From contig NIVC01001794.1 of the NCBI GenBank assembly GCA_002269645.1, forward strand, positions 124,001 through 188,000: a stretch of 64,000 nucleotides of DNA, given 5' to 3'. The DNA comes from Macrostomum lignano. Taxonomy: Eukaryota. Position 1 is the first letter of the stretch, and every line of letters begins with the position of its first letter. The position numbers were made by a program, and so were the translations under genes. Below are positions 10,304 through 61,767 of the stretch, one piece after another. Below the pieces are notes generated by a model. The model saw only the letters and a program-made list of their open reading frames with translations, made no database searches and had not been told where the DNA came from.

Positions 10304-13300
10304 TCAGTTCTCGACTCTGGACATTTCGATAGATCCGCCTCCCTGTGTATTGCCTGGTGTTGGAAAGAAAAGGTGACTGTAACTTACAACTGGCAAATTT
10401 GACAATGAGTCCTGTTTGTGATAAAATTTTATAAGCTCTTCTACTTTTGACAATAAGACCCGAATCAAAGCTACTTACTTCTAGCCAGCAGGCTGGCACG
10501 GGAGTTGCCGTTGCCGCGTTCACCGCCCACATCGACTCGGCTGCCGCTACGGCCTTGGCCGGCGCTGGCCCTGCTGCCGCTCCTAACGTTGCTCTGCGAT
10601 TCATCGGCGACTTTTGACGTTTGGGAGCTCTTCTTCATCAGCAGAACGATGACCACAATAGCCACAATTAGGCCAATACCTCCTAGCGAGGCTCCAACAG
10701 CTATGGCGACGATGTTGCTGCCATCGCCATCGACAATCACAGCATCTGTCTTCACGTCCAGCACCTGCAGATAGTCCCAGGACACGCTCAGGCTGCTGTT
10801 GCTCAGGTCTAGAAGAACTAACTGGCGGTTGTTCATGAGCTGCACCAGCAGTTGGGTAGCGGATGAGGCGCTAGTATTAGCACCAGACTGGCTGTTGATG
10901 GTAAAACTGATCAAGACGCTACCACTCGTGAACTGCATGTTAGTAATTTGCGACTCGCTGAGCCTGAGCTGACGTGCGATCTGACTCGTTAGGTGACCTC
11001 GAAGACTGGTTTCACTTGTAACAACGCTGGAAAACGACTCTGTGACCTTGATCTGCAGCGTCACAGCTGAGGTCTGTGTCTCCGAGAGGGTCGGAGCAGT
11101 TACGCTGGGAGCCACGGTTGTTGACGTTGTTGCCGTTGTTGGGCCTGTGGTACTTTCAGAGGTAGATGGAGCGATGGTTGTCTCCGGTTGGAAGCCTGGT
11201 GGTCCCTCAAAAACGCCAATGAATGAGGATATGTCATGGCACACACACGTTACGTGCCAGATGCCATCGTCGGTCTGGAATGGCGCGCGAGTTGTGCAGT
11301 TATCCGGGGTCCAGTCGGCTCCGCTCCAGCTGCGGCAGATGAGACTGATGCTACTAAGATTCACAGAGCCACTGATGTTGGTGGTGATAGTCACGCCATC
11401 ACCAAGGCGTGAAACATTCTGGTTCGCGCCGTCGCTCGGGTGAAATATTCCTACGTAGGCCAGAGGACTGCGTCGCGGAGAAATCGTCGGAGAAGCCACT
11501 TTGGCCTGTGGAGTGAGCAGATCCTTGTCCAGCAGGATGGTTCCGATGCAGGCACCGTCCTGGAAGCAGTCAGTCTGGCCACATGACCAGTTATAGTAGC
11601 GCTGCTCGAGATCGTCTCCAAGTGCAACCTGTTGACGGACTGTGAAATTGGATAGACAGTCGGTGCTTCCTGAGTCGCATCCCATCTCCAGATTGGCTGA
11701 ACCGACTGAGTTGAAAGACGTCTTGTACACGCGTACAACAGCCATTGTAGACGCTGCCGCCTGAGCTAGCGAGTTCGGATTTTGACTGTTGCAGAAGGCA
11801 GGAACGGTGTTAAGAATTGTAGCCTGGATATCAGCAGCTGTCGTCGAATCGAGTGTGGAGTGATAGTTTCCAGATGCGATGTCGAGGACGGACTTCACTT
11901 CAGTGGAGGTCATTTTGCTTGTTGTTCCACCCTGAGATCCCGACGTGTCGCGCCTTCGCCTTCGCTTACCAAGCACGCCATTTGAAAAAACTTGTGAGAC
12001 TTGAGAATTGAAAGCATCTAGACATTTTTTCAGAGCATTCAGTACCAAGTTAGTTATATACTGGCTGTTGGCTTTCGTTTTCCGAAACAGTTGACAGCTT
12101 GTTGCAGTCCTCAGACAGGAGACCGATGGCACACTGAAAGAATATATGTAGATATAGATATGCACTACGTATACAATTAACGCTTTTGCGTGACACAAAA
12201 AGAATTCATTAAAAAGAAGTAGAAAAGTGGCGAATTCGTTATATTCTAGACAAATTCAAATTCCACAGAATTCTTACTTGATGTCTAGAGTCATAACGTC
12301 CCGAATCGCCAGTCCCTGCACCAGCTCATTCTTCTTGTTCTTTTCCTCAGTTGACAGGCCAGTATCCGGCTCATTCAGAATCATACCGCCCAAAGCTGGA
12401 GCGTCAACTATAATTTAGGATATGAAATCGATGCAAGTTATTATTTAATTTTGATGAAATTGAACTAAAAAATGAAAATAATTTGATCACGCTCACAGCT
12501 GTTTGAAATATTGTTCAAGTTGTTTAGTAAATCGTCGAGCTTGGCAAGCGTTAGCTGCTTCGCTTGCACCTGAATTACAGTAGTAAATGAGAACCAATCG
12601 GAGCCTGCTCCGTTAGAGTCGATGGCTGAAGCTTTGCAGATCCAGTTTCCTCCAGGTAAACGAGTGGTGAGCAGTCTAGCGGGTGTTGGTTCACTAGTTA
12701 CGCTGACGCACTGGCTTGATGAATCTTGGCGACAGCACATGGCGCTGTAACTGAAGGACACGTCGGAATCGTCAGTGATATTCGGCCATATGGTGAGCGT
12801 GAAGGAGGTCTCCAGAGCGGCTCCTTGGCTGGGAGTCACAGACAGTGCTCCACCACTTGGTGGCGCATTCACGCGGAAGTCGAACTGGGCCTGAGCGGTC
12901 CCGGAACTGGCGCTGGCGATCAAAAGCAGTCGGTAGGAGACACCGGCAGCAAATCTGCAGCTCCGTCCTGGCTTGAGAACCAAAGTGATGAAGCAGCGTC
13001 GATTGGGTACGCATGTATCGGCCAGCGGCGGTCCTACTGAGCACTGCTGAAGCGACAGCGAGCCAAAGCCAGTCTCTTGAGTATCCACAGACCATTGAAT
13101 CTGGGTTATCTCACTGGCAATCACTAAAGCTGTCACCGGGACAGCAGCGTTTGGATTGATTGGTTTGTTGCTCGGCTCGGTCAAGATCCGGACTGATGGA
13201 GGTGGACGAGGCAAAATCTGCACAAGCTTTGTACGACTGGACCTTCGCTGACCCCGCTGACAACTGACGGTGAGGTTCATGAAGCCTGAGGGTAGCTCGT

Positions 13301-16300
13301 ATACGCTGGGGTCCGGCCAAGGAACTTGGATACTGTTCGATGATGTCTGAGTTCCATCCGAACCGAAGAAGCTGAATGAGGACAGCATGGTCCCAGTGTG
13401 TACGTTGCGCATGTAGACTGCCTCACCGTTGGCCCATTTGGTCAGATAAAAGGTGCATAATGTCGTCTCAGTCGAGTAGTCCGGATCGATGATGTACACG
13501 GATTCCTGCAGTGCATCGCTGACGCCGAGATCAGAGCGACCTCCGCGGACGAACATGAGAAACAGAGGGCGGCTGATCGTCTCCAGAAGCAAAAAGCCGC
13601 ACGCCACGTTGGGCCAAGTCGGCATGGAAGCGCAGACACTCAGGTTGTAGGTCTGGCCTCCTTGCAGGACTCCAGATCTCAGTCGGAAGAATTTACCTGT
13701 GATCGCCTGTTGGTCCACATTGATGGCTTTGGTGCCACCGACGATCTTCCACTTGTACTGCAAAAATAAAGTGTGGAGAATCACGTTGATGGCAGTGTAG
13801 GTATTTTATTGTATAGCAGACAACAGGTGTACTTTATAATTGATAGAAAGACAATTTAGGGATATGCTCATCAAGATTTTGATGCAAATTTTGCTTCTAT
13901 TATAACATTTTGCTGCATGATTTATTCTATAAGCGTTCTCAGAGTACTGTTACTTACACTCAGAGTGTCGATAGCCTTGGTATAGCAAAATGAAGGTCGG
14001 ACAATAAGCACAGCGCTGTACCACAGATCGGGCTTCACATACTTTTGCGGTCCGTAGATACTAATGCTGAATGGCGTTCGTTCAACGAGTCGTTTTACTA
14101 CGATGCTCGCCGTATTTGACTGTGTTCCGCATTCGTTCTGGGCAGAAGCCGTGATGTTGTATGACTCGCCAGGCGGAATCTGAAGAAGAAAGCAAAGATT
14201 TGAGACTGTGAGCTTTATGATTTTTTGAGTAATATCTTCTGACTTAAGCGCTTGAGATCACTAACATCCTTTCCGGCGTAGAAAGTGGTTTCTGTGGAAA
14301 ACTTCGACTGGAATGCAGCCAGCTCAGTTGCTTGACAGGTTGAGCCTGCAGCACACCGGATGTCCCAAGTGATCTGCTGCACCATCGATCCACTGATGAT
14401 GGCATACAGGGTGAACGAGTCACAGAGTCCGACGTTGGTCACCTGGTTGGCATCTGATTGGACTCCGGCCAAAAAGATGACAGGTGGCTTTCGACCGTTT
14501 GCATTCACAACAGCGGTGCTGACACTGGAACTGGTGGCCAGACTGATGTCGCTGCCACCCGCATAAATGATATTCGAATTGATGCTGATCCGCGAGCCAG
14601 AGCAGATTGTTGCGCCACGACCTTTCCACACGATGAGAGCGTTTGCCCTCGCGTAGCACTTTGGGCCTGAACCCATCAGCGCAAAAGTCGACGCATCAAA
14701 AATGGCCGAGCACGCCGTCTGTCGCAGCTGGATGTTTGTGTCAAACTCGAGACGCAGGTAGTAGCCAATGGCGTCATCAGTTGCTGAGAGCAGCACTGGA
14801 CCCTTACTCGAGCGGATCGAGAACGGCAGAGAGTTGTGCCTGGTTGGTGATTACAAGAAGTGTAATCGATGTGTCACTTGGTGTAAATCATTGCATTCAT
14901 ACTTGCAGCAATAAAAACAAACCACTCACTTGAACACCGCATATGCATCGTAGCTGATTGTTTGCGGCTTGCAGTTCATGACGCTGAGCTTCCATTGTAG
15001 CGGCTGTCGGACTTCGGCCAGCGCAGAGATATTGCAGGTGACGCTTGTCGCGCTGTCGAATCTGGCCGGCACAGTGAGAAAGCCAGTGCGCGGGTCGCAT
15101 CGGGTGTGGCGGCTAAGATCGTCGCAGTAGAGAAGGCAGACGAGATCGGGCGTGTTGACGAATCCCTGTCCGCTCACTGGCAGAGAGTAAACGGGATTTT
15201 CTAGCGTGAGTCCGGTCCCGACACTCAAGCTGGACAAGTTGGGAGGTCCAAAAACAGTCAAGTTTCCACCGGAAACGTCCTCGATGACTGTAGCACCGGA
15301 AGCGGTCAAGTATTTCACCTGTAGAGCGTACTCGCGAGCAACGAGACCCGAGGGCACAGAAAAGCGGAACAGACCAGAAGATACATCGATGGATATTGCT
15401 TGAAGCTCCGTGTAGAGCGACTGTCAATGTGAGAGCGGAGAAATTAGTTTGTATTTTATCAACGTAAATTGCACACTTAGAAACTGAAGCTTTAAAATGT
15501 TGAGTAATTCTGGAGTTTTGGTCTATTTTGCTTATATTCACCTACATCTACAATCAGTGTTAGTAAACCTTTAGGCGCGTTGCCACTAAATTAGGCCATT
15601 ATTCGTCACTATTAGGATAAACGTCTTGTACTATTTGTCTCGCCGCGTTTTACATCGTCGTGTAATTTACATTCGTGCAATTTGATAGCGGTGTACGTAA
15701 AAGAGCCTTTAGTTTTATTGTTGCAAAAATGGAATTGATGTCTTACCCGATCGGTCACTTTCAGCAGGCGCAGAGTGATTGAGCTGATTGTGAGGTTGAT
15801 GCTGCTGCTGCTGATTGTCACTTGCTGATAAGTATCGTATGACCCCACGCAAGCGTTTCGGGTAATCGTGAAGTGGATCCGAGCACAGATATCTCTCTGC
15901 GGGTCGCTGGGCAGCAGACAACGACCGCATTTGTCAAGAGTCTTTCGAGACGACACCGATGGCTCAGCGACACCGTCACAGCCTGTGATACAGGAAGTGT
16001 CGTTGCTGCAGCCGCAGGGTCCTACGCCGAAGTTGGCCGCTCTTCCGGTGCTTCCCTCGGTGCAGAAGCCGCACTTATTGATGCGCGCAGTGCTGTTCAC
16101 TTTACCATCGCACCACACCGATCGAATGTACTCATCAGCAGTCGCAAATCGACTGGAATTGTAGCACAGGCCAGGCATTGGCGAGACAAAGGATCCGTTG
16201 CATCGACCAGCGCAGTCCTTTCCATAACGCATGGCTTTGCCAGTTCTTCCACCAACGCAGTTGCCACAGTCGTTCCAGATCGCTGTGCCATTTGCATCAC

Positions 16301-19300
16301 CGTTGCAGTCGATGCATGAGCGACCATTTCCACCACAGATATTACAGACATCAGTCTGGAGACCTGACCACGGCTGATTGTCGCAGCCAACCGTCACTGG
16401 ACGGACAACTGCCCATCCAGCAGCTGCACTTTTGTTGACCACGCTACTGACAACGAGTGGATTGATGTAGACTTGTTGTTGGGCGACCAGCTTCTCTGCG
16501 GCTGTAAAAGCAAGGATGGCGCGACTGCGGGACCAGGACGCCGGGACGGTTGGCCGAAATCGGATCGTAGCGTTGGCCGGGAGGAACATCGCTGTGACAG
16601 GCCCCGTACCGTTGACGCCATTTGCTAGGAAGTCAGAGAGCTGCAGTGTGGAGGAAGATGTAGATGAGATGCTTCCCAAACACTGGATGGTTGAAAAGGC
16701 ATCCGAAGTTTTTGCTGAGTCCTTAAAACGCGAGAGCATGCGATACTGCTCAAACGCAGGCTTGTCAGCGGATACATTCAGAGTCTGCCAGGACATGGAG
16801 TTCGGCAGCTGGTACTCCAGAACACCACTTGCATCGTCGCCGAGGCCTTGTAGAACGAGAGCGCCCAACTCGAATGTATTATCGTCACAAAAGAACAGTG
16901 AAACCATGTCGCCGACCCGAATCTGAGTGACGTAGTTTTCTCCATGCCGTTGCAGCATGAAGCCTCGCTCTCGCTGTAATTTCTGACTCACGTACTCGTT
17001 CTCCCTGTCCTTGAGAACACCAAAAGAGAAGAAATCTTTATTCACAACAGGAGGCTGCTCCTTGTGCAGCACGCTGATTGTGACTTTGACTATCCCACCC
17101 ATGGCTGTAAAAGGAAGGACGGATGGAACAAGGGAACCAGAGCTGGTGTAGCTGAAGCGAGGTGGCAGTCCACTCCAAGCCACGCACATCAGAACGAAGG
17201 TCTTGGTAGCGGCATTGCGATTTGGTTCGAATCGGATGTGGGCTTGGCTTGGACTCGGAACGAGAAAGCCTCTCATGTACTCGATGATACCGCTTGTCGT
17301 GACTCCACTTCGAAACGTCAGGTTTCCGTAGATGTCAGGCCTGGAAGTTACACAAATTACGTTTACACTATATTTATGTATATACTGAAGTATAATACTG
17401 GAACCACAAACATTCACATGAGATATTTTTCATTCTCCTTTTATTCCATTATTTCAAGTATTAAATCGAAAAATCTATTTATGTTTCGGTTCTTTTTACA
17501 TTTCTTACATAGTTATGGCAGCGATGTGCCGTCTCTACGTTAGTAGCAGTAGTAACTTACCACACCGGCTCCACCATGTACTTGCAGAACACGCCACCGA
17601 CAGTCGAGGACTCAACCCTTGAGCGCATGTTGCAGAGACTTCGCTCAGAGTGCAGATCAATTACGTTGTCAAGTCTTAGATCGCACACGCTGCTGCTCGG
17701 GAACCGGTTTGGACTCAACACCAGCACTGTAGAGAGAGACTCATCCAGCACAGAGGTGTCCATGACGCTGAGGCTGGATTTAATCAGTGTCACATTGGGA
17801 GGTAGAGCTCTCGGATGTAGGAGCACAAAGCTTCTCATAACGCATTCCGATCCGTCCGGAAGCAGCAGCGAGTACGTGAGATTGATGAGTACATTTTGAG
17901 CGCCGTGTAAGAGAAGCTGGAAGCAACTGTCGGGTCTGATCGGCTCTGGACTTCCGCTGACGTTGATTTTGCGACCATCCAGCTCCATCTCGACACCGGA
18001 ATCTGGGCTGACAAAAAGCACTCTGATGCGTGCGGCAGACGCAGCGCCAAGAAGGTGACCTGTGCGACAGACACCGAGGTCCGGAGCATCCCTGTACAAG
18101 CCCTTGAAGCCAGAAACGAGCTGAGCAGCTGGCAACAGCCGATGAAAGCGAGGACACATTTGGCGGCAGTTGGCGAAGTCTAAGCAGGCACCGAATGCGT
18201 GAGGACAGGCAGTCTAAGGGTGAACAGTTTGAATGAAACAACCTCGTCACCGCTAATTAGACATAGTACGTACGAAAAATGAGCATTTATAGCTGCTACG
18301 AATTTTGAAATTTAGTTTATAGTAAGCATTCAGTCGAATACTGTCGCTCACCTCGTTGGCGCCCTCGCATATCGTGAAATTGTGAGGCAGAGATGCACAG
18401 AAGCTTGGCTCAGCTGTAGCATTCTCGCAAACACCGTTGGATGGGCAGAATCGCTGAAACGAGCAGCATTTTGCTATATTTTTTGTTAACAAGAGAATCC
18501 TAAGAATCAAGAATGCAGCACTTGGCGGCTAGACTCGCATTTGGCAATTGTAGCAGACAACAAATCAAAAGGGTATAGCGCGTATATAGAGCTCGTTATA
18601 CTTATTATCAATTTTTAAAAAGGCGAGGTTGACACAGGCTTTAGCGGGGGGTTATTAATGTGCATGAATTGCTATGTACTCGTACGTTAACCAATCAGAA
18701 TGGAAGGGGTGAGAAAAGGTGGCGTGAGGCGCGGAGGGGGGTGCAATAGACAAATCATGAGTGTGAGTAATTGTACAGATACAGACGTACATTGAAATAA
18801 AAAATTCTTTACTCTTCAAACCATTTTCTGCAACACCAATATTATTATATTATTATTATATAGTTTGAGACTTACCTTGCCTTCTGCGTTGCACCGTGCA
18901 CCCTGCTCGACAAGAGACAACACACAAGCAGCCTTGCAAAGCAGTAGACCGCTGGGTGGGCAGGAAACCTGCGCAAAAAGATAGCAATTGGTTTCATGTA
19001 GTTGGAACAACGATAAAAAATCTGTCGCTTATACTCACTTTGAATCGGCAATCCCTAGGCTTATCTGTAGTCAGTTGATCGGTTGTAGTTTTTTGATCGA
19101 TTGTAGTAAGAGGATCAGCTGTAGTACGTTTATCGGTTACTGCGGATGTCTGTGACTCAAGGGTAGACACGGATGGCGGGACTGTTGAGTCCATACTCCA
19201 CGTTGTGCTTGGACAGGATCCAACAGGGACGCACCTCTTGACGGCCTCACAGTAAGTCTCAGCCTAAAAAAAAGAATTTTAACGATTACAGAGCAACAGA

Positions 19301-37300: not shown

Positions 37301-40300
37301 CTGTTCTGCAGGCATCCGGCATTGTCCTGAGTCTAGGATTCAGCTGCATGCGTTTCATCTCCCTGGTCACATGAAGCTCAATAGCGAATCTGCTTCTCGA
37401 GTGTTCAGCCCAAAGCATGAGCTCGTGAGCTTTGCTGGCGCCACTATGGCTCTCTGTGTGTCTGTCTTACTAAGTTTGTCTCGCACACCATTTCTGCCGC
37501 GTCCTGCATCACCCTCCTTTCACAGATCAGAGCCGCGTTCCGCACGAACCTCTTACTCTAGCGTTCAAAACAGCCTCTTTGAGTGCAGTCTCTTTCATCC
37601 ACAGGCGTCGCCAGCACCTGACCCCACCCAGGATAACACTCGACTGGCTTTCGTCTTCCGCGGAGACCGACAACTTCTGAGCAGGCAGCCACACAGCACA
37701 GCCGCTGTGCCCTATGTAGCACAGCACATCTTCTCCTTCTGCCCTGCAACAGCCCTCTGCTTCCATCTTCCGCTGTGGCCGCTCATTGCTGTCTGCCTGC
37801 CCTGGTGGCCTCCGCCTGACCATCGGCAAGTCTAAGACCAACCAGTTCAAGATCGCCAGCAGCTGCTAGCCTTCCTTATTTAATGCCCACCGATCTGTCA
37901 TGTTGCTGCTCTCTAGACAGTCATCCGGGTCGAGCCGCAGCAGTCTCTGTTGTCTGTTCTGGGTGTCCACAGAGTCCCTTTGGCTGCCTCGGCCTTCATG
38001 CGTCTGATTAAGCGGGGCCTGTCGATTCGCGACATCCCAGGGGGCAACTTCTCAGGCAACAGTCTCCGCAGAAGCAGAGCCAGCCAGCGACGTCTTCCAC
38101 GTGCCTTGGTGACTGGCGCTCCGAATTCACCTTCCGCAATTGCTCGAACGATGCAGCTATTGCTCGTATGCGTTCTGCCGTCCAGCGGATTGTTACTTCT
38201 GTTAACTAACTTTGGTTCCTCTACTTCCCTCGCTTTTTTTCTTTCGGGGTTGGGGTCGTCTCTTTTTCGTTGCCTTTTGCTCGCTGCCACCCCGCCGAAT
38301 TTGTGTTTGTTTCTCTGCTGTGGGTTTGCGAGTCAAAGAAATTTTTCGTGAATTCCCTGGGCTAACATATGCTTCAGATTACTCGATCTATTCTACCACC
38401 CCAGTGAAACACTGCATCATCACTTCCGGCGACCCAGTTTTCTGCAACCCACGTCCTCTCTCTCCGGCAAAGTACACAGAAGCCAAGTCGGAATTTGAAA
38501 AGCTCCTTGAAAATGGGCATCCTTTGCCCGTCCTGCAGCCCTTTGGCTTTGCCCCTCAACATAGTCAAGAAAGCTGACGGACCGAGAAGACCCTGCGGCG
38601 ACTGCCGCGCCCTAAATAGCGCTACAATTCCCGACAGGTATCCACTTGCGCTTATCCAATATTTTCACCACTTACTCCACGGCAGCCAAATCTTTAGCAA
38701 ACTCAATTTGATCAAAGCTTACCACTTCATACCAGTCGCCGACAAGGACATCACTAAAACAGCAAGCTGTACACCGTTTGGCTCCTTCGAGTATGCCCGA
38801 ATGCTATTTGGGATGCACAACTTCATTTGTACTTTCCAAAGTTTCAACGACTCACTATTTGGCAAACCTGCTTAGCGTCATAACTTGCGTCTGCAATATT
38901 CTAATTCATACCGAATCAGAGAACGACCACCATCGAGATGTTAAGATTGTTTTTCTACAACGCCTTCACAAGGAGGGCCTTCGAGTTCAGTAGACCGAAT
39001 ACCACTTCTTCTAAAGTAGCATCGAGTTCCTTGGTCACCTAGCAGCCGGAATCCAGCCACTTTCGTTCCGTGTGGCAGCGCAGCGCAAAACCTCGCCTCC
39101 AGAGATTTTAAGAGCCTCACGAGTACATGGAATGTCTGCGTTCAAACAAAGCCGGGTTCTATCCCGATTTTTCGACTTATCCGTTTCTATATTTCTAGAA
39201 AGTTCTACTAAAAGATTAGATTAGGAGCCCACGTGAATGATAGGCGATTGCAAAGCCCGGATTTTAGCCGCTAATGCGCCCAATAGAAAAAAGTGAGCAG
39301 CTCTCTCGTTTTAACGCTCACCAGTAAGTCTGCGCTGAAATCAAAGAATATAAATCTCAAAAACATTTTCACAAAAGATTTCTAACTTCTTTGATATTTG
39401 ACCATAAAACCCTAATGAATATATTCGTAAAATGAGCTATTTCCATTTCCTACACAAATAACTTTAATTTCAAATACAACCTGTAACTTACCTGGCCATT
39501 CGCAGCGCACTGCTGCTCCAACTGAGACAAACGGTCCAAGCAAGTGCTCGCGTTCACGCATCCATTGGCTGCAGCGCAGTCGATCTCTCCCTGCATTTTA
39601 TTGAAAACAAGCACATACGAGCGTACGAGTTGCACTGTGCCTTTGCTTTTACATTTCTAACCACAAATAGAAATGTACGTGTAAACATCAGCTCCTCACC
39701 ATGCTGCAATTTATGCTTTGTCGACAAGGCGAACCGATCGGAACGCAACTCTTTGTTTCCAGACATGGCTCATATCCATACTGGCAGCCTCGACTGTACT
39801 CGACTCGGAGAATCTCGTCTCCGAAGTAGTTTCCGTCAGTCGGAGGCGCGTCCTGCTCCGGCAGCAGTCCGTTCCACAGTCTGCATGTTAAATTGACACT
39901 GCCCGGCTGTCTGAGTTGCACATAAAAGTATGAGCTCTCAACCGATAGCAGTAGGTATCCTGAGCCGAACTTTCTGACAGAAGCGCCGCCATAGTAGGTG
40001 TAGGCGTAGAGCGAATATTCGGTGTAGAGCGACGACGCCTCAATGTAGCAGTAGGCAGCCTTGCTCGGCGCCTCTCGACACAGCTGACGAACGTGGTCGT
40101 TGGGTGCGGAGTCGGGAAACTCGAACCGACCGAGACTGTCGCACCAAGGCGCAGATGCTGTCGACTGGTTCAATACTAAGCCTAAAATATTCCTTGGGTA
40201 GACATTGTCATACATGTATCCAGTGCCGTTCTTTTTCAGCACGACTGTCGGGAATCCAGCTGGTGGCGGTCGCGACTTCGGCGGAAGCAGGAATCCGTAG

Positions 40301-43300
40301 GTAGGCTGACACTCCGCGACTACTTGGCTGTCATTGTTAAAGTAGCGAACCCTCAGCTTTACCCACGATAGACTCGCATTGGAGCCGGCGTAGTTGGACA
40401 TTCCCAGAGCATCTGCGCTCACGCAGCTGTTATTATCGAGAAGCCTGTTGAGTGTAATTTCCTGTCCGATGCGGCTGTTGTCGAGCTTGTTGGATCCGAG
40501 TCTCATCACAGGAGGACCCACTTGCTGCACAACGGTGAAACGAACACTCAGATCCGCAGGAATGAAGCAGGAGTTTGTAGGCGACACGGACGTGATGATG
40601 GTCTTGTTGTTGGGACACGACCTCTTTGCCACCGCTTCATCGCACTGATCAGACTCGAGACACAAGTTGTATCCAGCATAACAGCGAACCATGGAAGGTG
40701 AGCCTGTCGTGGTCGAGTTTGTGGAGTAGTAGCTTGTCGAACTGCAGGTAACGCTTGCGTAGTCGCATGTGGACCATGACAAATACTGCGTCCTATTGTA
40801 GCACATGCCTTGCTTCGGACAAAAGTTCTGAAAGAACGCAATTAAGAAAACATTTTTATTTTTTATCCTGGGAAAAAATTGAACCAATTGTCTAAAGATC
40901 TTAGTAAGGCAATAACTATCCTATCCTAAGCATCATCACGATTTAAAAGAAAAACTGCGATGCGCACGTAACGAAAATGCTTAAATCCTTAAAATAGCAG
41001 AGCACATCTTCTCCTTCTGCCCTGCAACAGCCCTCTGCTTCCATCTTCCGCTGTGGCCGCTCATCGCTGTCTGCCTGCCCTGGTGGCCTCCGCCTGACCA
41101 TCGGCAAGTCTAAGACCAACCAGTTCAAGATCGCCAGCTGCTAGCCTTCTTTCCTTATGTAATGCCCACCGATCTGTCATGTTGCTGCTCTCTAGACAGT
41201 CATCCGGGTCGTGGTCAAAGCCTACCACTTCATACCAGTCGCCGACAAGGACATCACTAAAACAGCAAGCTGTACACCGTTTGGCTCCTTCGAGTATGCC
41301 CGAATGCTATTTGGGATGCACAACTTCATTTGTACTTTCCAAAGTTTCAACGACTCACTATTTGGCAAACCTGCTTAGCGTCATAACTTGCGTCTGCAAT
41401 ATTCTAATTCATACCGAATCAGAGAACGACCACCATCGAGATGTTAAGATTGTTTTTCTACAACGCCTTCACAAGGAGGGCCTTCGAGTTCAGTAGACCG
41501 AATACCACTTCTTCTAAAGTAGCATCGAGTTCCTTGGTCACCTAGCAGCCGGAATCCAGCCACTTTCGTTCCGTGTGGCAGCGCAGCGCAAAACCTCGCC
41601 TCCAGAGATTTTAAGAGCCTCACGAGTACATGGAATGTCTGCGTTCAAACAAAGCCGGGTTCTATCCCGATTTTTCGACTTATCCGTTTCTATATTTCTA
41701 GAAAGTTCTACTAAAAGATTAGATTAGGAGCCCACGTGAATGATAGGCGATTGCAAAGCCCGGATTTTAGCCGCTAATGCGCCCAATAGAAAAAAGTGAG
41801 CAGCTCTCTCGTTTTAACGCTCACCAGTAAGTCTGCGCTGAAATCAAAGAATATAAATCTCAAAAACATTTTCACAAAAGATTTCTAACTTCTTTGATAT
41901 TTGACCATAAAACCCTAATGAATATATTCGTAAAATGAGCTATTTCCATTTCCTACACAAATAACTTTAATTTCAAATACAACCTGTAACTTACCTGGCC
42001 ATTCGCAGCGCACTGCTGCTCCAACTGAGACAAACGGTCCAAGCAAGTGCTCGCGTTCACGCATCCATTGGCTGCAGCGCAGTCGATCTCTCCCTGCATT
42101 TTATTGAAAACAAGCACATACGAGCGTACGAGTTGCACTGTGCCTTTGCTTTTACATTTCTAACCACAAATAGAAATGTACGTGTAAACATCAGCTCCTC
42201 ACCATGCTGCAATTTATGCTTTGTCGACAAGGCGAACCGATCGGAACGCAACTCTTTGTTTCCAGACATGGCTCATATCCATACTGGCAGCCTCGACTGT
42301 ACTCGACTCGGAGAATCTCGTCTCCGAAGTAGTTTCCGTCAGTCGGAGGCGCGTCCTGCTCCGGCAGCAGTCCGTTCCACAGTCTGCATGTTAAATTGAC
42401 ACTGCCCGGCTGTCTGAGTTGCACATAAAAGTATGAGCTCTCAACCGATAGCAGTAGGTATCCTGAGCCGAACTTTCTGACAGAAGCGCCGCCATAGTAG
42501 GTGTAGGCGTAGAGCGAATATTCGGTGTAGAGCGACGACGCCTCAATGTAGCAGTAGGCAGCCTTGCTCGGCGCCTCTCGACACAGCTGACGAACGTGGT
42601 CGTTGGGTGCGGAGTCGGGAAACTCGAACCGACCGAGACTGTCGCACCAAGGCGCAGATGCTGTCGACTGGTTCAATACTAAGCCTAAAATATTCCTTGG
42701 GTAGACATTGTCATACATGTATCCAGTGCCGTTCTTTTTCAGCACGACTGTCGGGAATCCAGCTGGTGGCGGTCGCGACTTCGGCGGAAGCAGGAATCCG
42801 TAGGTAGGCTGACACTCCGCGACTACTTGGCTGTCATTGTTAAAGTAGCGAACCCTCAGCTTTACCCACGATAGACTCGCATTGGAGCCGGCGTAGTTGG
42901 ACATTCCCAGAGCATCTGCGCTCACGCAGCTGTTATTATCGAGAAGCCTGTTGAGTGTAATTTCCTGTCCGATGCGGCTGTTGTCGAGCTTGTTGGATCC
43001 GAGTCTCATCACAGGAGGACCCACTTGCTGCACAACGGTGAAACGAACACTCAGATCCGCAGGAATGAAGCAGGAGTTTGTAGGCGACACGGACGTGATG
43101 ATGGTCTTGTTGTTGGGACACGACCTCTTTGCCACCGCTTCATCGCACTGATCAGACTCGAGACACAAGTTGTATCCAGCATAACAGCGAACCATGGAAG
43201 GTGAGCCTGTCGTGGTCGAGTTTGTGGAGTAGTAGCTTGTCGAACTGCAGGTAACGCTTGCGTAGTCGCATGTGGACCATGACAAATACTGCGTCCTATT

Positions 43301-46300
43301 GTAGCACATGCCTTGCTTCGGACAAAAGTTCTGAAAGAACGCAATTAAGAAAACATTTTTATTTTTTATCCTGGGAAAAAATTGAACCAATTGTCTAAAG
43401 ATCTTAGTAAGGCAATAACTATCCTATCCTAAGCATCATCACGATTTAAAAGAAAAACTGCGATGCGCACGTAACGAAAATGCTTAAATCCTTAAAATAG
43501 CAGAGCACATCTTCTCCTTCTGCCCTGCAACAGCCCTCTGCTTCCATCTTCCGCTGTGGCCGCTCATCGCTGTCTGCCTGCCCTGGTGGCCTCCGCCTGA
43601 CCATCGGCAAGTCTAAGACCAACCAGTTCAAGATCGCCAGCTGCTAGCCTTCTTTCCTTATGTAATGCCCACCGATCTGTCATATGTTGCTGCTCTCTAG
43701 ACAGTCATCCGGGTCGTGGTCAAAGCCTACCACTTCATACCAGTCGCCGACAAGGACATCACTAAAACAGCAAGCTGTACACCGTTTGGCTCCTTCGAGT
43801 ATGCCCGAATGCTATTTGGGATGCACAACTTCATTTGTACTTTCCAAAGTTTCAACGACTCACTATTTGGCAAACCTGCTTAGCGTCATAACTTGCGTCT
43901 GCAATATTCTAATTCATACCGAATCAGAGAACGACCACCATCGAGATGTTAAGATTGTTTTTCTACAACGCCTTCACAAGGAGGGCCTTCGAGTTCAGTA
44001 GACCGAATACCACTTCTTCTAAAGTAGCATCGAGTTCCTTGGTCACCTAGCAGCCGGAATCCAGCCACTTTCGTTCCGTGTGGCAGCGCAGCGCAAAACC
44101 TCGCCTCCAGAGATTTTAAGAGCCTCACGAGTACATGGAATGTCTGCGTTCAAACAAAGCCGGGTTCTATCCCGATTTTTCGACTTATCCGTTTCTATAT
44201 TTCTAGAAAGTTCTACTAAAAGATTAGATTAGGAGCCCACGTGAATGATAGGCGATTGCAAAGCCCGGATTTTAGCCGCTAATGCGCCCAATAGAAAAAA
44301 GTGAGCAGCTCTCTCGTTTTAACGCTCACCAGTAAGTCTGCGCTGAAATCAAAGAATATAAATCTCAAAAACATTTTCACAAAAGATTTCTAACTTCTTT
44401 GATATTTGACCATAAAACCCTAATGAATATATTCGTAAAATGAGCTATTTCCATTTCCTACACAAATAACTTTAATTTCAAATACAACCTGTAACTTACC
44501 TGGCCATTCGCAGCGCACTGCTGCTCCAACTGAGACAAACGGTCCAAGCAAGTGCTCGCGTTCACGCATCCATTGGCTGCAGCGCAGTCGATCTCTCCCT
44601 GCATTTTATTGAAAACAAGCACATACGAGCGTACGAGTTGCACTGTGCCTTTGCTTTTACATTTCTAACCACAAATAGAAATGTACGTGTAAACATCAGC
44701 TCCTCACCATGCTGCAATTTATGCTTTGTCGACAAGGCGAACCGATCGGAACGCAACTCTTTGTTTCCAGACATGGCTCATATCCATACTGGCAGCCTCG
44801 ACTGTACTCGACTCGGAGAATCTCGTCTCCGAAGTAGTTTCCGTCAGTCGGAGGCGCGTCCTGCTCCGGCAGCAGTCCGTTCCACAGTCTGCATGTTAAA
44901 TTGACACTGCCCGGCTGTCTGAGTTGCACATAAAAGTATGAGCTCTCAACCGATAGCAGTAGGTATCCTGAGCCGAACTTTCTGACAGAAGCGCCGCCAT
45001 AGTAGGTGTAGGCGTAGAGCGAATATTCGGTGTAGAGCGACGACGCCTCAATGTAGCAGTAGGCAGCCTTGCTCGGCGCCTCTCGACACAGCTGACGAAC
45101 GTGGTCGTTGGGTGCGGAGTCGGGAAACTCGAACCGACCGAGACTGTCGCACCAAGGCGCAGATGCTGTCGACTGGTTCAATACTGGGCCTAAAATATTC
45201 CTTGGGTAGACATTGTCATACATGTATCCAGTGCCGTTCTTTTTCAGCACGACTGTCGGGAATCCAGCTGGTGGCGGTCGCGACTTCGGCGGAAGCAGGA
45301 ATCCGTAGGTAGGCTGACACTCCGCGACTACTTGGCTGTCATTGTTAAAGTAGCGAACCCTCAGCTTTACCCACGATAGACTCGCATTGGAGCCGGCGTA
45401 GTTGGACATTCCCAGAGCATCTGCGCTCACGCAGCTGTTATTATCGAGAAGCCTGTTGAGTGTAATTTCCTGTCCGATGCGGCTGTTGTCGAGCTTGTTG
45501 GATCCGAGTCTCATCACAGGAGGACCCACTTGCTGCACAACGGTGAAACGAACACTCAGATCCGCAGGAATGAAGCAGGAGTTTGTAGGCGACACGGACG
45601 TGATGATGGTCTTGTTGTTGGGACACGACCTCTTCGCCACTGCTTCATCGCACTGTGTCTGTCTTAGACACATATTGTAACCGGAATAGCATCGGATCAG
45701 AGGCTCAGTGCTGGTGCTGGTGGCATTGTCGCACGGGCTGCTCATGTAACTGCAGGTGTCCCAGGGCATGTAAACAGTTCTGTTGTAGCAGATTCCTTGT
45801 TTAGGGCAGAAGTTCTAAAAAATATTTGTTAGATTATTATCTTTTTCACTTGGAAAGAAGTACGTAGTTGAAGGTAAAATTTTAGAGTTTCCATGCGTGT
45901 CAATGTGTGTACTATTGTTTTCTTGCAAGTCGGTGAATTTCGGGTGGACGGTGTACATTGGAGATCCTCGTACATATGCTTTGTATTGTTGTCTGCCATC
46001 CCAGAAGGCAAAGTGAATCTGCCCTTGTAGCTGCGAATGTTTTTTCGAAGATATAAGAATATGAGTCAAATTAAATTAAGTGACTCAAGAGCTGTTAAAC
46101 TGACGTAAATGCTCGTAGATTTTTATGCGACTCATAACTGTGCATGAGAATTTGTTTTCTGATAAGTAGAACGAACAGAATGCAGCGCGTATACCAGTCA
46201 AATTTGGAAAATTTGTGATACGCAAATTTTTATTTGCTATTCCACCAGGGTGTATTAGAGACCGTCTACTGAAGAGAAGCAGGAAAAGAATTTGAAGCGA

Positions 46301-48455
46301 ATCTCTTAGTCTTATATAGAGTTAGCAAAAAAATTGCGCGCTGGCTTTTGAATAAAAATTAGACTGTTAAAACCGTCTGACAAAGTGATGACCAGAAACC
46401 AGTCCTGGACTATAACGAGTTAATAAGAACAAACACGATTCTTTCTTTGTCAAAAATTCCAGTGAATGATTTTTTTGAGAAAAACTGGACCTTGAAGATT
46501 TCCACCCATTTGGATTCAAACTTATGCGAACTGGCACTAGATGTCAAAAGTCCTTATGACAGGGGCAGATTTTTATGCAAGCTAGAATAAGAAACGAGGT
46601 GCAATTCAGGATGGACAATTATATATCAATATGTACTTTTGTAAAGTATTTTTACAGTAATTGTATTCTTCATGAAATAAGAATATTAAGACATTTCTAT
46701 CCATGCGATGGGACAGAAAGAATGGCATAACCTACTTGGTTGTTCGTGGCACACTGCTGCTCCAAGTCAATAATGCTGCCCAAGCAGGCACTCGCGTTGG
46801 CACAACCGTTAGCGGCAGGGCAGTCAAACTCTCCCTGTAAATTTATTTTGTACGCTTCGTCAGGTACAGAAAATAGTTACTACTGAGCAGTTAAGTCCCT
46901 ATGTTAGTACATACCGCGGTACAGTTCAGTCGCTCCCGACACAAAGTGTCTGCTGGAAGGCAGTTTTTTGCTGGCAAGCACGGGTTCAGGCCCGATGGAC
47001 AGTGTATACTGTATTTGATTTGGAGAATCTCGTCTCCAAAGTAGTTTCCATCAGTCGGGGGAGTGCCTTTCATCGGCAGCAGTCCGTTCCACAATCTGCA
47101 TGTCAGATTCACACTTCCTGGCTGTCTCAAATATGTATTCATATACATTTTCTTTATATCGAGGATCAGATATCCAGATCCATAGTGCATTACTGGAGCA
47201 CCACTGGAGTAGGAGTAGGCATAGATAGAATACTCTGTGTAGTGAGACGACGCCTCGATGTAGCAGTAGGCAGCCTTCCTTGGTATATCTCGGCACAGTT
47301 CGCGCTTTCGCTTATTTGCTCCCCGTCCGGGAAACTCAGCGATACCGAGGCCATCGCACCATGGAGCTGATGCATTTGACTGGTTCAATGCTGAGCTTAA
47401 AATATTTCCCGGGTAGACATAGTCATGCATGCTTGCAGTGCCGTTCTTTTCTAACTCGACTGTCGGGAAACCAGCTGGTGGTGGTCGCGACTTCGGCGGA
47501 AGCAGGAATCCGTAGGTAGGCTGACACTCCGCGACTACCTTGTTGTCCTTGTTAAAGTAGCGAACCCTCAGCTTTACCCACGATAGACTCGCATTGGAGC
47601 CGGCGTAGTTGGACATTCCCAGTGCGTCTGCGCTCACGCAGCTGTTGTTATCGAGAAGCCTGTTGAGTGTAATTTCCTGTCCGATGCGGCTGTTGTCGAG
47701 CTTGTTGGATCCGAGTCTCATCACAGGAGGACCCACTTGCTGCACAACGGTGAAACGAACATTCAGATCCGCAGGAATGAAGCAGGAGTTTGTAGGCGAC
47801 ACGGACGTGATAATGGTCTTGTTGTTGGGACACGACCTTTTCGCAATCGCTTCTTCGCATTGACTAGATTTTAGGCATAAGCCGTATCCAGCATAGCATC
47901 GAGCCTTTGAACTGATGTTGTAACCCGAATAGCTGGTGCAAGATTCGCTGGAGTAATCGCAAGTGCCCCAGAAGTTGTACTCTGTTTGATTCCAACAGCG
48001 GCCTTGCTTCGGGCAGATTGCCTAGGTGGGAATTAAAAAAATTGCATTAATTGTCTTATGTGTTGTTCATTTACGAGTACTATTAGAGACTTTTGAGCGC
48101 ATTGTGAATGCTCAAACTTCAAATACTCGAACGTCCATCGAGCGTTCACGACTAAGACTCTCACCAAGTCATTTGCGGCGCAATCCTCCTCCATCGATGT
48201 AATTTCGTCCATGCAGACGGAGAAGTTTTTGCAGCTACTCGTTGTTGGACAGAACATCTCAGTCTAAAATTGGAGTTTGCACATTGAATGATTCCTATCA
48301 TCTGGACTCTATTATTGGGCCCGTACATATCTGATCTCTTCAAAAACGACCGAATGACTTACTTCATCGGAACAGTTTCCAGGAGAGGCGGTTTGACTGG
48401 CCACACCGTGTGCCAGCAGCAGTGCCAACCACAGTTGAAGCAGGGCGCCTGCCAT
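10304..48455 (-). CDS. Giant single-pass cell-surface protein (~4,813 aa): signal peptide, 6x unrecognised Cys-rich module, DCxG repeats, REJ, GAIN/GPS, SEA, 1 TM (polycystin-1/REJ-like ectodomain)
   Basis: Hand-built 25-exon model, all GT-AG and phase-consistent: 48455-48363, 48263-48165, 48021-46915, 46834-46736, 45814-44708, 44598-44500, 43330-42203, 42093-41995, 40827-39700, 39590-39492, 28032-26905, 26806-26708, 20446-19340, 19263-19039, 18968-18876, 18453-18352, 18213-17561, 17340-15747, 15420-14930, 14839-14266, 14179-13958, 13757-12497, 12407-12278, 12133-10479, 10353-10304. Total 14,442 nt, divisible by 3. Starts [21 protein letters not shown] and ends [12 protein letters not shown]. 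There is no transcript evidence. Confidence 0.8.
10479..12133 (-). CDS. Exon 24: GAIN/GPS, S/T stalk, SEA-like domain, TM helix, cytoplasmic tail
   Basis: [16 protein letters not shown]...[13 protein letters not shown] (GPS-like), T-rich stalk, VTLQIKV...[29 protein letters not shown] (SEA-like), [28 protein letters not shown] (TM plus stop-transfer). Confidence 0.82.
12497..13757 (-). CDS. Exon 22: REJ domain
   Basis: YKWKIV...[11 protein letters not shown]...[26 protein letters not shown] matches the REJ signature NxPPxGGxxxVxPxxGxALxTxF. Confidence 0.8.
15747..17340 (-). CDS. Exon 18: beta-rich region followed by tandem (D/G)CxG...CGxC cysteine repeats
   Basis: [83 protein letters not shown]. 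Confidence 0.75.
19340..20446 (-). CDS. Large module exon A6 (369 codons, phase 0-0)
   Basis: Acceptor attcag|AATTTC, donor AGCTCT|gtaagt; shares the near-identical core SCFIP...GDEIL with the other five copies. Confidence 0.85.
21950..22900. repeat. Degenerate duplicated repeat block with ccttgacat/ccttgaaat subrepeats and short CCCTAA-like tracts
   Basis: Two related ~400-bp units (~21950-22340 and ~22370-22820), each with many (g)ccttga(c/a)at(c/g)tcag motifs and a ctaaccctaaccctagcctaacccta-like tract (22081, 22505). Confidence 0.55.
22930..24615. repeat. 22-23 bp minisatellite (tttttacatgacgcttctatga)n, roughly 70-75 units, intronic
   Basis: Directly visible tandem array with variant units and higher-order blocks. 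Confidence 0.95.
25500..26075. repeat. Purine-rich (GA/AAG) low-complexity tract
   Basis: Almost entirely A/G; explains the spurious S/L-rich and E/R-rich ORFs at 25403-26192. Confidence 0.9.
26905..28032 (-). CDS. Large module exon A5 (376 codons, phase 0-0)
   Basis: Acceptor tttcag|AACTTT, donor ACCAGG|gtaact; followed by 99-nt exon 26806-26708 ([33 protein letters not shown]). Confidence 0.85.
28430..28960 (+). pseudogene. Ty3/Gypsy (CsRN1-like) gag-protease remnant
   Basis: [14 protein letters not shown] (retropepsin active site) and a downstream [13 protein letters not shown] flap-like motif; stops and frameshifts. Confidence 0.65.
29250..30559 (+). mobile_element. 5'-truncated non-LTR retrotransposon 3' end with RNase H and CCHC finger (I superfamily, LOA/Lian-like)
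   Basis: YCFTDG...[11 protein letters not shown]...[10 protein letters not shown]...[21 protein letters not shown] (RNase H); LSGHGYF..H...CPFC...[11 protein letters not shown] (CCHC). Frameshifted. A short 3' tail continues at 31598-31618 after the P-like insertion. Confidence 0.85.
30560..31589 (-). mobile_element. Non-autonomous P-element-like DNA transposon (1,030 bp), 136-bp TIRs, 8-bp TSD
   Basis: TIRs 30560-30695 and 31454-31589 (CACAGAACTTACACAGAAT...) with about 2 mismatches; TSD GCACTAGC at 30552-30559 and 31590-31597. The internal minus [22 protein letters not shown]...YCRLRLHHW resembles the C-terminus of P/THAP9 transposases. Confidence 0.88.
32087..34668 (-). pseudogene. pol of the Mag-like element (PR-RT-RH-IN) in three frameshifted pieces
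   Basis: ORFs 34318-34668 (protease), 33530-34309 (RT) and 32087-33400 (RNase H C-terminus plus integrase); the RNase H start is disrupted. Confidence 0.88.
34669..35571 (-). CDS. Gag of the Mag-like element
   Basis: MATRIG...RYEFHQMKQ...[10 protein letters not shown]...[35 protein letters not shown]. It ends in an in-frame TAA directly before MLLDTGS. Confidence 0.85.
   Translation of the reverse strand: MATRIGARQLEILNFDECRKRWIQRFEIIASPEGWKDDTKRNAFLASIGPKGFDIIADAVSPDEPTSKSYEQLVGVLKSQIKPDKLAIALRYEFHQMKQKKDEDTASYARRLRLGAEGCQFTDINERLCDQFIFGLENRDILRKLLTEKLEDLTLEKVTTVASACEAVGRGEQDMSKEEVFKVQMKKNFLSSSASSKWTPKPTQLRSKSAQKHEARACYCCGKPNHSKAQCKFKNFKCRLCGKVGHLKTAVCRSGGNSLTKSATISAVTGKTPEPDDCDNVLSLGGERFKRQGVINGTHV
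35628..36735. mobile_element. Non-autonomous TIR element (CAC...GTG ends, ~108-bp TIRs, TA target duplication) inserted in the Gypsy 5' LTR
   Basis: CACCATTTTACCCTCGA... / ...TCGAGGGTAAAATGGTG, flanked by TA on both sides. The other LTR shows the empty site ttggTAttgttgg (31630-31642). Many internal (t)tgtcaaaat subterminal repeats. Confidence 0.9.
35749..36204. mobile_element. MITE nested in the previous element, carrying ~12 copies of a 19-bp repeat (gatgcttgctatctgggtg)
   Basis: ~85-bp TIRs gggtacttgctatttggga... / ...tcccaaatagcaagtaccc; the 19-bp array at ~35826-36062 is an amplified piece of the TIR. No clear TSD. Confidence 0.75.
36912..37215 (+). pseudogene. DIRS/Ngaro-like reverse transcriptase C-terminal fragment
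   Basis: [30 protein letters not shown]...LWLPMDN...[12 protein letters not shown] matches the DIRS pattern LGF.IN..KS...P.Q...FLG....L.LP....L..L.GKL.F. Confidence 0.65.
38345..39130 (+). pseudogene. Ty3/Gypsy (CsRN1-like) reverse transcriptase remnant, continuation of 28430-28960
   Basis: FPGLT...[21 protein letters not shown]...[27 protein letters not shown]...[16 protein letters not shown]...[13 protein letters not shown]; stops and frameshifts. Confidence 0.8.
39700..40827 (-). CDS. Large module exon A4 (376 codons)
   Basis: Same translation as A3; followed by 99-nt exon 39590-39492 ([33 protein letters not shown]). Confidence 0.8.
42203..43330 (-). CDS. Large module exon A3 (376 codons)
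   Basis: Same translation as A4; 2,503 bp offset. Confidence 0.8.
44708..45814 (-). CDS. Large module exon A2 (369 codons)
   Basis: N-flank like A6 ([13 protein letters not shown]), C-flank like A3/A4 ([15 protein letters not shown]). Confidence 0.85.
46915..48021 (-). CDS. Large module exon A1 (369 codons, most diverged copy)
   Basis: Acceptor cctag|GCAATC, donor ACCGCG|gtatgt; unique N-flank [21 protein letters not shown]; the distal half of the core is diverged. Confidence 0.85.

Positions 48456-49349: not shown

Positions 49350-49692
<343 letters not shown>

Positions 49693-55346: not shown

Positions 55347-61767
<6,421 letters not shown>

Follow-up and report, generated by a model that had tools for sequence, protein, structure and literature searches.

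A 64,000-nucleotide stretch of the Macrostomum lignano assembly (contig NIVC01001794.1; hereafter the window) carries on its minus strand an intact gene for a surface glycoprotein that spans the membrane once and belongs to the polycystin-1/REJ family; its outer half is an array of six modules without a match to any described domain. Taken as a whole, our data are probably best explained by a type I REJ-family protein, rich in disulfides and N-glycans and of the truncated, SpREJ1-like kind, that bears a homogenised array of orphan modules. The predicted gene runs from an ATG at position 48455 of the window to a stop codon ending at 10304 and comprises 25 exons (Table 1). Its predicted coding sequence of 14,442 nt encodes 4,813 amino acids with zero internal stops, all 24 introns begin with GT and end with AG, and the exon phases are consistent throughout. 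This rebuild, made computationally and independently from the sequence, arrived at exactly the coordinates of the 25-exon, ~4,800-aa reading frame that an earlier sequence-only reading had described. For exon 18, an acceptor at 17397 was dropped for 17340; over this junction, two paralogue predictions read ...VQPVW followed by (S/P)DIYGN. Public predictions cover the gene only as fragments and contain obvious mis-splices. One of them, P0011 (NCBI BOX15_Mlig013328g1), aligns ungapped with residues 3418-4813 of our model at 99.1% identity, and the stop codon of the model is common to the public models. Collinearity with the Mlig_3_7 contig NIVC01001490.1 extends over window positions 20734-8004 (98.4%). 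An exact-protein look-up found no transcript record for a spliced fragment of the model, and we found nothing relevant in the literature on this locus or on Macrostomum REJ/polycystin.

Table 1. Predicted exons, modules and other features of the gene, in window coordinates.
Feature	Position	Strand	Remarks
Exons 1-5	48455-48363; 48263-48165; 48021-46915; 46834-46736; 45814-44708	minus	
Exons 6-10	44598-44500; 43330-42203; 42093-41995; 40827-39700; 39590-39492	minus	
Exons 11-15	28032-26905; 26806-26708; 20446-19340; 19263-19039; 18968-18876	minus	
Exons 16-20	18453-18352; 18213-17561; 17340-15747; 15420-14930; 14839-14266	minus	
Exons 21-25	14179-13958; 13757-12497; 12407-12278; 12133-10479; 10353-10304	minus	
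Start codon and signal-peptide-like segment (20 residues)	48396..48455	minus	Kyte-Doolittle score 1.75
Module 1	46915..48263	minus	A1 48263-48165, B1 48021-46915; most divergent copy, 70-75% identity to others
Module 2	44708..46834	minus	A2 46834-46736, B2 45814-44708
Module 3	42203..44598	minus	A3 44598-44500, B3 43330-42203
Module 4	39700..42093	minus	A4 42093-41995, B4 40827-39700; protein identical to module 3
Module 5	26905..39590	minus	A5 39590-39492, B5 28032-26905; split by 11,459-bp intron 10
Module 6	19340..26806	minus	A6 26806-26708, B6 20446-19340; split by 6,261-bp intron 12
Three tandem 2,503-bp genomic units (exons and introns)	38709..45655	minus	99.7-99.8% identity
Post-array exons	17561..19263	minus	Thr-rich linker, three small exons/exon starts with module-flank-type Cys motifs, then Cys-poor region
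Cys-rich block, repeated D-x-CG-x-C motifs	15891..16397	minus	first repeat weakly like ADAMTS5 cysteine-rich region, E = 0.021
REJ domain	12501..13760	minus	PF02010, E = 1e-19, profile positions 15-432 of 452
Polybasic furin-type site KRRRRRD	11947..11967	minus	between REJ and GPS; read from sequence
GPS-type motif, 14 residues ... CVCHDISSF	11221..11337	minus	aa 4512-4550
Ser/Thr/Pro-rich linker (about 50% S/T/P), then ~110-aa SEA-like piece	10726..11220	minus	
Single TM helix	10713-10633	minus	aa 4720-4746, Kyte-Doolittle score 2.82
TM and 67-aa Ser/Gly/Arg-rich cytoplasmic tail	10307..10713	minus	last 16 codons in exon 25

The array is built from exon pairs. Six A exons of exactly 33 amino acids, each with the pattern C-x5-C-x5-C-x10-C, alternate with six B exons of 369, 369, 376, 376, 376 and 369 amino acids, every one of which encodes 20 cysteines and 10 N-x-S/T sequons. 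A module comprises one such pair in phase 0-0, the 4-Cys exon preceding the 369/376-aa exon, and within the latter Cys-rich N- and C-flanks enclose a mainly beta core of ~280 amino acids (mostly beta in both AlphaFold models, at low confidence). The sixfold alternation with a sequon-rich, beta-like core, as originally proposed, was thereby recovered, with units 3 and 4 identical. Comparison of the module with itself in hhalign found no internal duplication in the core. The exon-pair arrangement recurs in a relative with 53% identity, found on an SRA contig, where a B exon with identical boundaries precedes an A exon.

Searches for a known domain in the module were negative throughout. At E ≤ 10, Pfam returned no match for 11 module relatives apart from one chance hit to F-box_5 (E = 0.12), and none for the isolated Cys linker, the core or other sub-pieces of the module. 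Matches to Glyco_hydro_99, FAZ1_cons and F-box_5 among the exon-scale pieces and the 11 relatives were sub-threshold and were rejected as chance. None of the ZP, GON, disintegrin or EGF-like Pfam models was matched by the module; as a control, the ADAM-like gene alongside has a genuine disintegrin exon, and this scored 2e-15 in the same library. A PDB profile search with the module found no ZP, EGF or disintegrin chain, and gave one marginal LDLa-type match on the C-flank (E = 0.4). We rejected LDL-receptor class A as an assignment: the match rests on cysteine spacing, no acidic D-x-S-D-E cage is visible, and Pfam gives no match. Across the module, the GPS region, the SEA-like piece, the mid-region, REJ and the Cys repeats, PDB sequence and profile searches produced only this match and the ADAMTS5 resemblance of Table 1, also marginal. 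A HMMER profile of the module had seven matches among 1.84 billion (1.84e9) representatives, five of them named M. lignano entries or Macrostomum-type fragments and the other two a garbled 166-aa module-like fragment (P0009) and a chance bacterial repeat protein; a repeat word-index search with the profile and a metagenome scan added no new relatives. AlphaFold2 modelled the whole B module with a pLDDT of 56 and the core alone with a pLDDT of 62 and a pTM of 0.52, both at low confidence, and Foldseek comparison of the two models with the PDB gave no TM-score above 0.25, the weak matches being generic, with no ZP structure among the top 50. Because the models are weak and the matches generic, we leave the fold without assignment and make no claim of a new one. 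By the methods used, then, the module family is restricted to Macrostomum-type sequences and has no counterpart among described domains, in line with the lineage specificity that had been inferred for the receptor. The further suggestion of a possibly undescribed domain was not established: no Pfam, PDB or confident Foldseek match emerged, but most of the protein likewise misses Pfam, the structural models carry little confidence and UniProt names the sequences after known domains.

These last points also bear on a reading that we regard as a serious possibility, if not a probable one: the core could be a highly diverged known extracellular domain (a ZP module, GON or tandem Ig-like/FN3-type domains) between flanks that are diverged EGF-, disintegrin- or LDLa-type knots, looking orphan as a result of fast-evolving flatworm sequences and a family too shallow for profile methods. 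Module alignments stayed at a Neff of about 2 after attempts to deepen them. UniProt automatically names module-only fragments EGF-like, disintegrin and GON, and a paralogue ZP domain-containing, names that point to PROSITE profile matches. With the exception of REJ, practically the entire 4,813-aa protein lacks a Pfam match, so that failure to match is the norm here; the C-flank has LDLa-like cysteine spacing, and the weak Foldseek matches are all two-domain beta-sandwich proteins. The negative Pfam, PDB and Foldseek results above argue against this reading, as does the fact that UniProt gives one and the same repeat four conflicting names, suggestive of low-specificity matches to cysteine patterns.

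The orphan array that we favour has grown recently. The tandem 2,503-bp units are, as judged from their near-identity, its recently duplicated or homogenised part. The cores of B2-B6 are identical at the DNA level, B1 is partly diverged and the flanks are mosaic; we read this as ongoing homogenisation by unequal crossing-over and gene conversion. Symmetric exon phases allow units to be gained or lost with the reading frame kept, and UniProt A0A1I8J2W3, from another assembly, has four units of the 3/4 type where our model has two. Together, the near-identical units, the homogenised cores and the differing unit count bear out the expanding array of the sequence-only reading, with instability as an alternative description. 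It is rather doubtful that the module count, or the lack of differences between units 3 and 4, merely reflects misassembly of a difficult repeat. The 99.8% identity of the three units, introns included, the four-unit public model and the break of the Mlig_3_7 contig at the array edge would all fit such an artefact, but copy-number variation or homeologues in a partly duplicated genome explain the differing counts equally well, and, however many identical units there are, an array of no fewer than five modules is real, since B1, B2, B3, B5 and B6 all differ in sequence and have mosaic flanks.

In abalone VERL and further gamete-recognition proteins of the tandem-repeat type, concerted evolution likewise keeps arrays of long extracellular repeats near-identical, and in VERL the first repeat or repeats escape homogenisation, as B1 does in part relative to B2-B6. 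Each VERL repeat is a ZP-N domain of about 150 aa, and the parallel concerns the evolutionary pattern only, implying neither a relationship in sequence or structure nor a role in fertilisation. A stronger version, in which the core is a new Macrostomum-confined extracellular fold in a fast-evolving, copy-number-variable REJ-family receptor for partner or gamete recognition, with repeats 2-6 concerted and the first escaping as in VERL, strikes us as improbable.

Beyond the array, the post-array exons contain the motifs VSCPPSG.., RFCPSNG.. and TACPHAF... With hhalign, we detected no homology of the module to this region or to any other part of the protein; a resemblance between 12-residue stretches of the module and the GPS region was insignificant (probability 4.6%). 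The D-x-CG-x-C block has no Pfam match. REJ, by contrast with the rest, scores 70.9 bits against a cut-off of 25, was seen again on the spliced protein, and is the only significant Pfam match in the protein when every exon-scale piece is searched. About 310 aa after REJ and about 170 aa before the membrane lies a GPS-type motif, whose pattern C-x2-W..W..C..C-x-C-H..S-x-F occurs once in the protein and in 0 of 5000 shuffles. The canonical GPS cleavage region reads C-x-C-x-H-L-T-x-F; here, in C-V-C-H-D-I-S-S-F, the His is displaced by one position and the cleavage triad reads H-D-I/S, not H-L/T. The GPS model PF01825 scores 8.4 bits against a cut-off of 22.5 (E = 4.1), and the region matches no GAIN chain in the PDB. 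The REJ/GAIN assignment made earlier therefore holds firmly for REJ, but the GAIN part rests on a sub-threshold motif with a displaced His at a non-juxtamembrane position, and the GAIN domain is at most putative. The SEA-like piece carries a 10-residue motif at aa 4650 and matches neither the Pfam SEA model nor PDB chains. Its F-x-x-G-S-V-hydrophobic motif within ~110 aa, the preceding Ser/Thr/Pro linker, the single TM and the short tail recall MUC1-type membrane mucins, a resemblance at the motif level only given the missing Pfam and PDB SEA matches.

A Kyte-Doolittle scan of the whole protein found just two segments, a signal-like one at the N-terminus and one strong TM, and no PLAT/LH2 or 11-TM region follows the latter, the tail being without a Pfam match; with the stop codon shared by public models, this agrees with the predicted signal peptide and single pass. 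The claim of a single gene is also upheld by the lone predicted signal peptide at the N-terminus, the lone TM near the C-terminus and a REJ half that has no signal peptide of its own. A split into two genes, the first for a secreted protein made up of the array as far as B6 and the second, downstream, for the REJ/TM part, is very unlikely: the exon chain is a computational prediction, the NCBI annotation on its contig comprises the last 1,396 aa only and a retained intron after B6 would lead to a stop within about 17 codons, yet that annotation is truncated because the NCBI contig ends just upstream of B6, the downstream part lacks a start codon with signal peptide although it is clearly extracellular (Cys-rich, with sequons and REJ), every junction is in phase with canonical splice sites, and UniProt models P0012 (this locus), P0008 and P0014 (paralogues) and the NCBI paralogue model P0013 run from B modules into REJ.

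Features of the PKD1/REJ family are REJ, GPS, PLAT and 1-11 TM, and sea urchin SpREJ1, 8 and 9 have one TM each, SpREJ1 being a 210 kDa glycoprotein (PMC1934368); the single-pass precedent that had been invoked is thus a sound one. The Macrostomum protein shares with SpREJ1, 8 and 9 the large glycosylated type I form, REJ, a candidate GPS-type motif N-terminal to the single TM, a variable lineage-specific N-terminal recognition region, and the absence of PLAT/LH2 and of an 11-TM channel-like part, an absence which therefore places it in a truncated subgroup and not outside the family. SpREJ1, at about 1,450 aa, is much smaller than the 4,813-aa protein, and its distal part consists of C-type lectin and EGF domains, whereas six orphan ~400-aa modules take this place in Macrostomum, with no Lectin_C or EGF Pfam match anywhere in the protein; in the latter, moreover, a mucin-like linker and the SEA-like piece separate the non-canonical GPS from the TM. 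PKD1, PKDREJ and PKD1L resemble it in the spacing of REJ and a GPS-type motif about 300 aa later, and in a giant modular ectodomain composed of repeats, of which human PKD1 has 16 of the PKD type. Unlike this group, it lacks PLAT, the 11 TM and the coiled coil at the C-terminus, and Pfam detects in it none of the PKD, LRR, WSC or lectin domains.

A role as a recognition or adhesion receptor may be envisaged, in which the array would project from the membrane as a glycosylated stalk, both long and rigid, or as a recognition surface. Since the tail has no recognisable signalling domain, any signal would go through partner proteins. Alternatively, the ectodomain might be shed at one of three candidate membrane-near points, namely the polybasic site, the GPS-like motif and the G/SV motif of the SEA-like piece. 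In situ hybridisation, RNAi and transgenesis are established in M. lignano, itself a model species for sexual conflict, and expression and function are therefore directly testable.

Orphan lineage-specific repeats are common in giant invertebrate surface proteins and the sequences were already public as uncharacterised fragments; we regard the protein as a lineage-specific curiosity that opens no long-standing question, not as a new kind of system. Should the model hold, the few single-pass REJ proteins on record would be joined by one from a flatworm; the protein would further indicate that the distal recognition region of the REJ family can be wholly replaced by a lineage-specific module, and its exon-pair array would be a clear-cut instance of evolution through unequal crossing-over and gene conversion.

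Scanning the minus strand for stop-free stretches, we found six coding blocks of ~1.1 kb, each opening with ...cag/AAC TTY TGY CC (N-F-C-P-K-Q-G) and closing with N-C-[ST]-x/gt, interleaved with six 99-nt exons of the pattern C-x5-C-x5-C-x10-C. Chaining to the downstream blocks relied on canonical splice sites and phase, and three junctions were set with public predictions. The resulting model comprises 25 exons with GT-AG introns throughout and a CDS of 14,442 nt, encoding 4,813 aa without internal stops. Its start and stop match exactly those of the sequence-only reading, as do the sizes of the A exons (33 aa each) and of B1 to B6 (369, 369, 376, 376, 376 and 369 aa), so that this independent rebuild bears out the anatomy claimed for the gene as a whole. 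Each B exon, consisting of a core between two Cys-rich flanks, holds 20 Cys and 10 N-glycosylation sequons. A 14.4-kb open frame over 25 phase-compatible exons cannot have arisen by chance. Moreover, residues 3418–4813 align without gaps, at 99.1% identity, with the NCBI model BOX15_Mlig013328g1 (P0011; 1,396 aa), which confirms the nine 3'-most junctions and with them the short terminal exon.

In order from the N terminus, the predicted protein has a signal peptide, six A+B modules (aa 32–2464), a Thr-rich linker, three small exons or exon starts whose Cys motifs are of the kind seen in the module flanks, a Cys-poor region of ~530 aa without matches anywhere, and a Cys-rich block with repeated D-x-CG-x-C motifs, whose first repeat shows a weak similarity (E=0.021) to the cysteine-rich region of ADAMTS5. 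There follow ~370 aa without Pfam matches, which we suspect by eye to be Ig- or IPT-like, the REJ domain (PF02010, E=1e-19), ~310 aa that contain the polybasic site KRRRRRD and close with a GPS-type motif (...CVCHDISSF), a ~55-aa linker (50% Ser/Thr/Pro), a SEA-like piece of ~110 aa, a TM helix and a Ser/Gly/Arg-rich tail of 67 aa. The polybasic site is partly present in paralogue predictions.

Coordinates of the gene, its repeats and its neighbours in the window
Feature	Position (strand)	Details
Gene, ATG to stop codon end	48455–10304 (-)	
Six ~1.1-kb coding blocks	48021, 45814, 43330, 40827, 28032, 20446 (-)	
Three 2,503-bp units	38709–45655	99.7–99.8% identical, introns included
KRRRRRD, furin-type	11967–11947	model aa 4302–4308; inside presumed GAIN-A region, between REJ and GPS-like motif
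Ty3/gypsy-type LTR retrotransposon	31659–36908 (-)	inside intron 10, host-gene orientation; gag-like, protease-like, RT, RNase H and integrase open frames over two reading frames
LTR terminal repeats	31659–31786, 36781–36908	128 nt, 99% identical
Long stop-free stretches	36765–38664, 29243–30450 (-)	intron 10, outside LTR element; no Pfam matches
Ser/Leu-coding low-complexity stretch	25406–26261	adjoins intron-12 satellite
AT-rich satellite, 1.7 kb	22906–24618	intron 12; self-alignment offsets step in ~23-bp multiples, copies 81–90% identical
Collinear part of NIVC01001490.1 (Mlig_3_7)	20734–8004	98.4% identity; contig end (~20734) about 2 kb downstream of satellite
Penelope-like retroelement, intact 617-aa ORF	4565–6418 (+)	downstream of gene; reverse transcriptase PF00078, C-terminal GIY-YIG-like motif
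AG/CT-type dinucleotide microsatellite, ~500 bp	49327–49821	~0.9 kb upstream of start codon
Tandem minisatellite	53693–54168 (-)	repetitive ORFs (...SLAVKCHWQSSVTGSQ...), unit ~16 codons by eye; probably non-coding
(GTCT)n-type microsatellite	~56305–56820	abuts ADAM-like gene
ADAM-like gene	56672–57115, 57650–57979 (-)	upstream neighbour, same strand; exon with genuine disintegrin domain (PF00200, 2e-15), domain start CGNG...EQCDCG in upstream exon

The modules and the REJ part very probably belong to one gene, as originally read. B modules are joined to the REJ part in the prediction for this locus (P0012) and in those of three paralogues (P0008, P0013 and P0014). The model holds only one signal-peptide-like segment (aa 1–19) and only one TM (aa 4720–4746), and its REJ half is plainly extracellular, yet has neither a start codon nor a signal peptide of its own. 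A look-up of a spliced fragment returned no transcript evidence for the exon chain.

The gene is already in databases as uncharacterised fragments, and no single public entry contains the complete protein. Contig NIVC01001490.1 of the same assembly (GCA_002269645.1), from which BOX15_Mlig013328g1 is annotated, ends just upstream of B6, which explains the truncated public annotation. In UniProt, A0A1I8FW02 and A0A1I8J2W3 (signal peptide plus modules) are named 'EGF-like domain-containing', A0A1I8J2V7 (a B-A-B fragment) 'Disintegrin domain-containing', A0A1I8J1P4 (a fragment) 'GON domain-containing' and A0A1I8G009 (a B module through REJ to TM) 'REJ domain-containing'; the paralogues are A0A1I8FVC6 ('ZP domain-containing'), A0A1I8I1B9 and the NCBI-only P0013 (BOX15_Mlig010875g1). 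This last, a partial, 95%-identical paralogue, lies in convergent orientation at the other end of the 56-kb NIVC01001490.1 (loci L004 and L005). M. lignano, a free-living flatworm, has several paralogues at 80–95% identity, which fits its partly duplicated genome. Several public models show obvious mis-splices or read-through into intronic transposon sequence. Since A0A1I8J2W3 and A0A1I8J1P4 read into the stop-free stretches of intron 10 as exons, these stretches probably represent further repeats that confuse gene prediction.

By sequence, the module is an orphan on every test run. Pfam at E<=10 gave no match in any of 11 module relatives (50–100% identical), nor in the isolated core or Cys linker, and a PDB sequence profile search gave only a marginal LDLa-type match on the C-flank. 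Scanning 1.84 billion cluster representatives with a HMMER profile yielded seven proteins: five that are either named entries of M. lignano or short Macrostomum-type fragments without a name, a garbled module-like fragment (P0009) and a bacterial repeat protein judged a chance match. Word-index searches gave four single-exon relatives (50–58% identity) on short SRA, ENA and JGI contigs. On the one contig inspected (L001, 53% identity), the B exon boundaries are unchanged and an A exon follows, and a further ORF (P0004) likewise reads through matching exon ends, so the exon pair is conserved as a unit in related species. Nearly all the rest of the protein also lacks Pfam matches, so that such failure is normal for this fast-evolving lineage. 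The automatic UniProt names imply PROSITE profile matches on the repeat (EGF, disintegrin, GON, ZP); the corresponding Pfam models do not match it, and the names are mutually contradictory. The lack of a Pfam or PDB family stands; the proposal of an undescribed domain is tempered by these names and the protein-wide Pfam failure.

Structure modelling, suggested in the sequence-only reading, used AlphaFold2 with alignments of 8 and 9 sequences (Neff about 2) and reached a pLDDT of 56 on the entire B module; the core scored 62, with pTM 0.52. Both models are mainly beta with three or four helices. Searched against the PDB with Foldseek, these low-confidence models matched only proteins of a generic two-sandwich type (PAD N-terminal domains, NF-kB RHD, cadherins, integrin hybrid domain; TM-scores <=0.25), a result that speaks neither for nor against a new fold.

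Self-comparison revealed the three near-identical genomic units, in line with the expanding repeat proposed earlier. B3 and B4 are identical, and at codon level the B2–B6 cores share the same DNA sequence without a single synonymous difference; the Cys-rich flanks differ strongly in a mosaic pattern. In the N-flank, B2 resembles B6, and B3 equals B4, both resembling B5; in the C-flank, B1 resembles B5. B1 shares a converted tract at codons ~60–180 and is diverged outside it. Such a pattern is characteristic of unequal crossing-over and gene conversion in an array with phase 0-0 exon pairs as units. Six A/B pairs are present in the window. Upstream of the intron that contains the transposon, however, A0A1I8J2W3, from another assembly, has four units of the B3 type and the window two, so the count either varies between haplotypes or homeologues or is insecurely assembled.

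Placement as a single-pass REJ protein without PLAT held: the 4,813-aa model contains no PLAT domain or further TM, and it shares its single TM with sea urchin SpREJ1, 8 and 9 (PMC1934368). The GAIN part of the claim fared less well. A GPS-type pattern occurs once, at the expected distance after REJ, and in none of 5,000 shuffles. Since it scores 8.4 bits with Pfam GPS (cut-off 22.5), its His is shifted from the position it has in the canonical H-L/T, and it lies 170 aa from the membrane rather than adjacent, a GAIN domain is only plausible and autoproteolysis doubtful.

We consider the general interest of the gene moderate-to-low. Its ~4,700-aa ectodomain would be membrane-anchored, glycosylated and disulfide-stiffened, and its distal array would repeatedly display identical cores with variable Cys knots on either side. 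The cytoplasmic tail has no recognisable signalling domain; any signalling would depend on partner proteins, an idea proposed for single-TM SpREJs and applied here. Alternatively, shedding might release the ectodomain at the polybasic site, the GPS-like motif or the SEA-like piece. This receptor may serve in recognition between gametes or partners, in adhesion or barrier function of the epidermis, or in mechanosensation.
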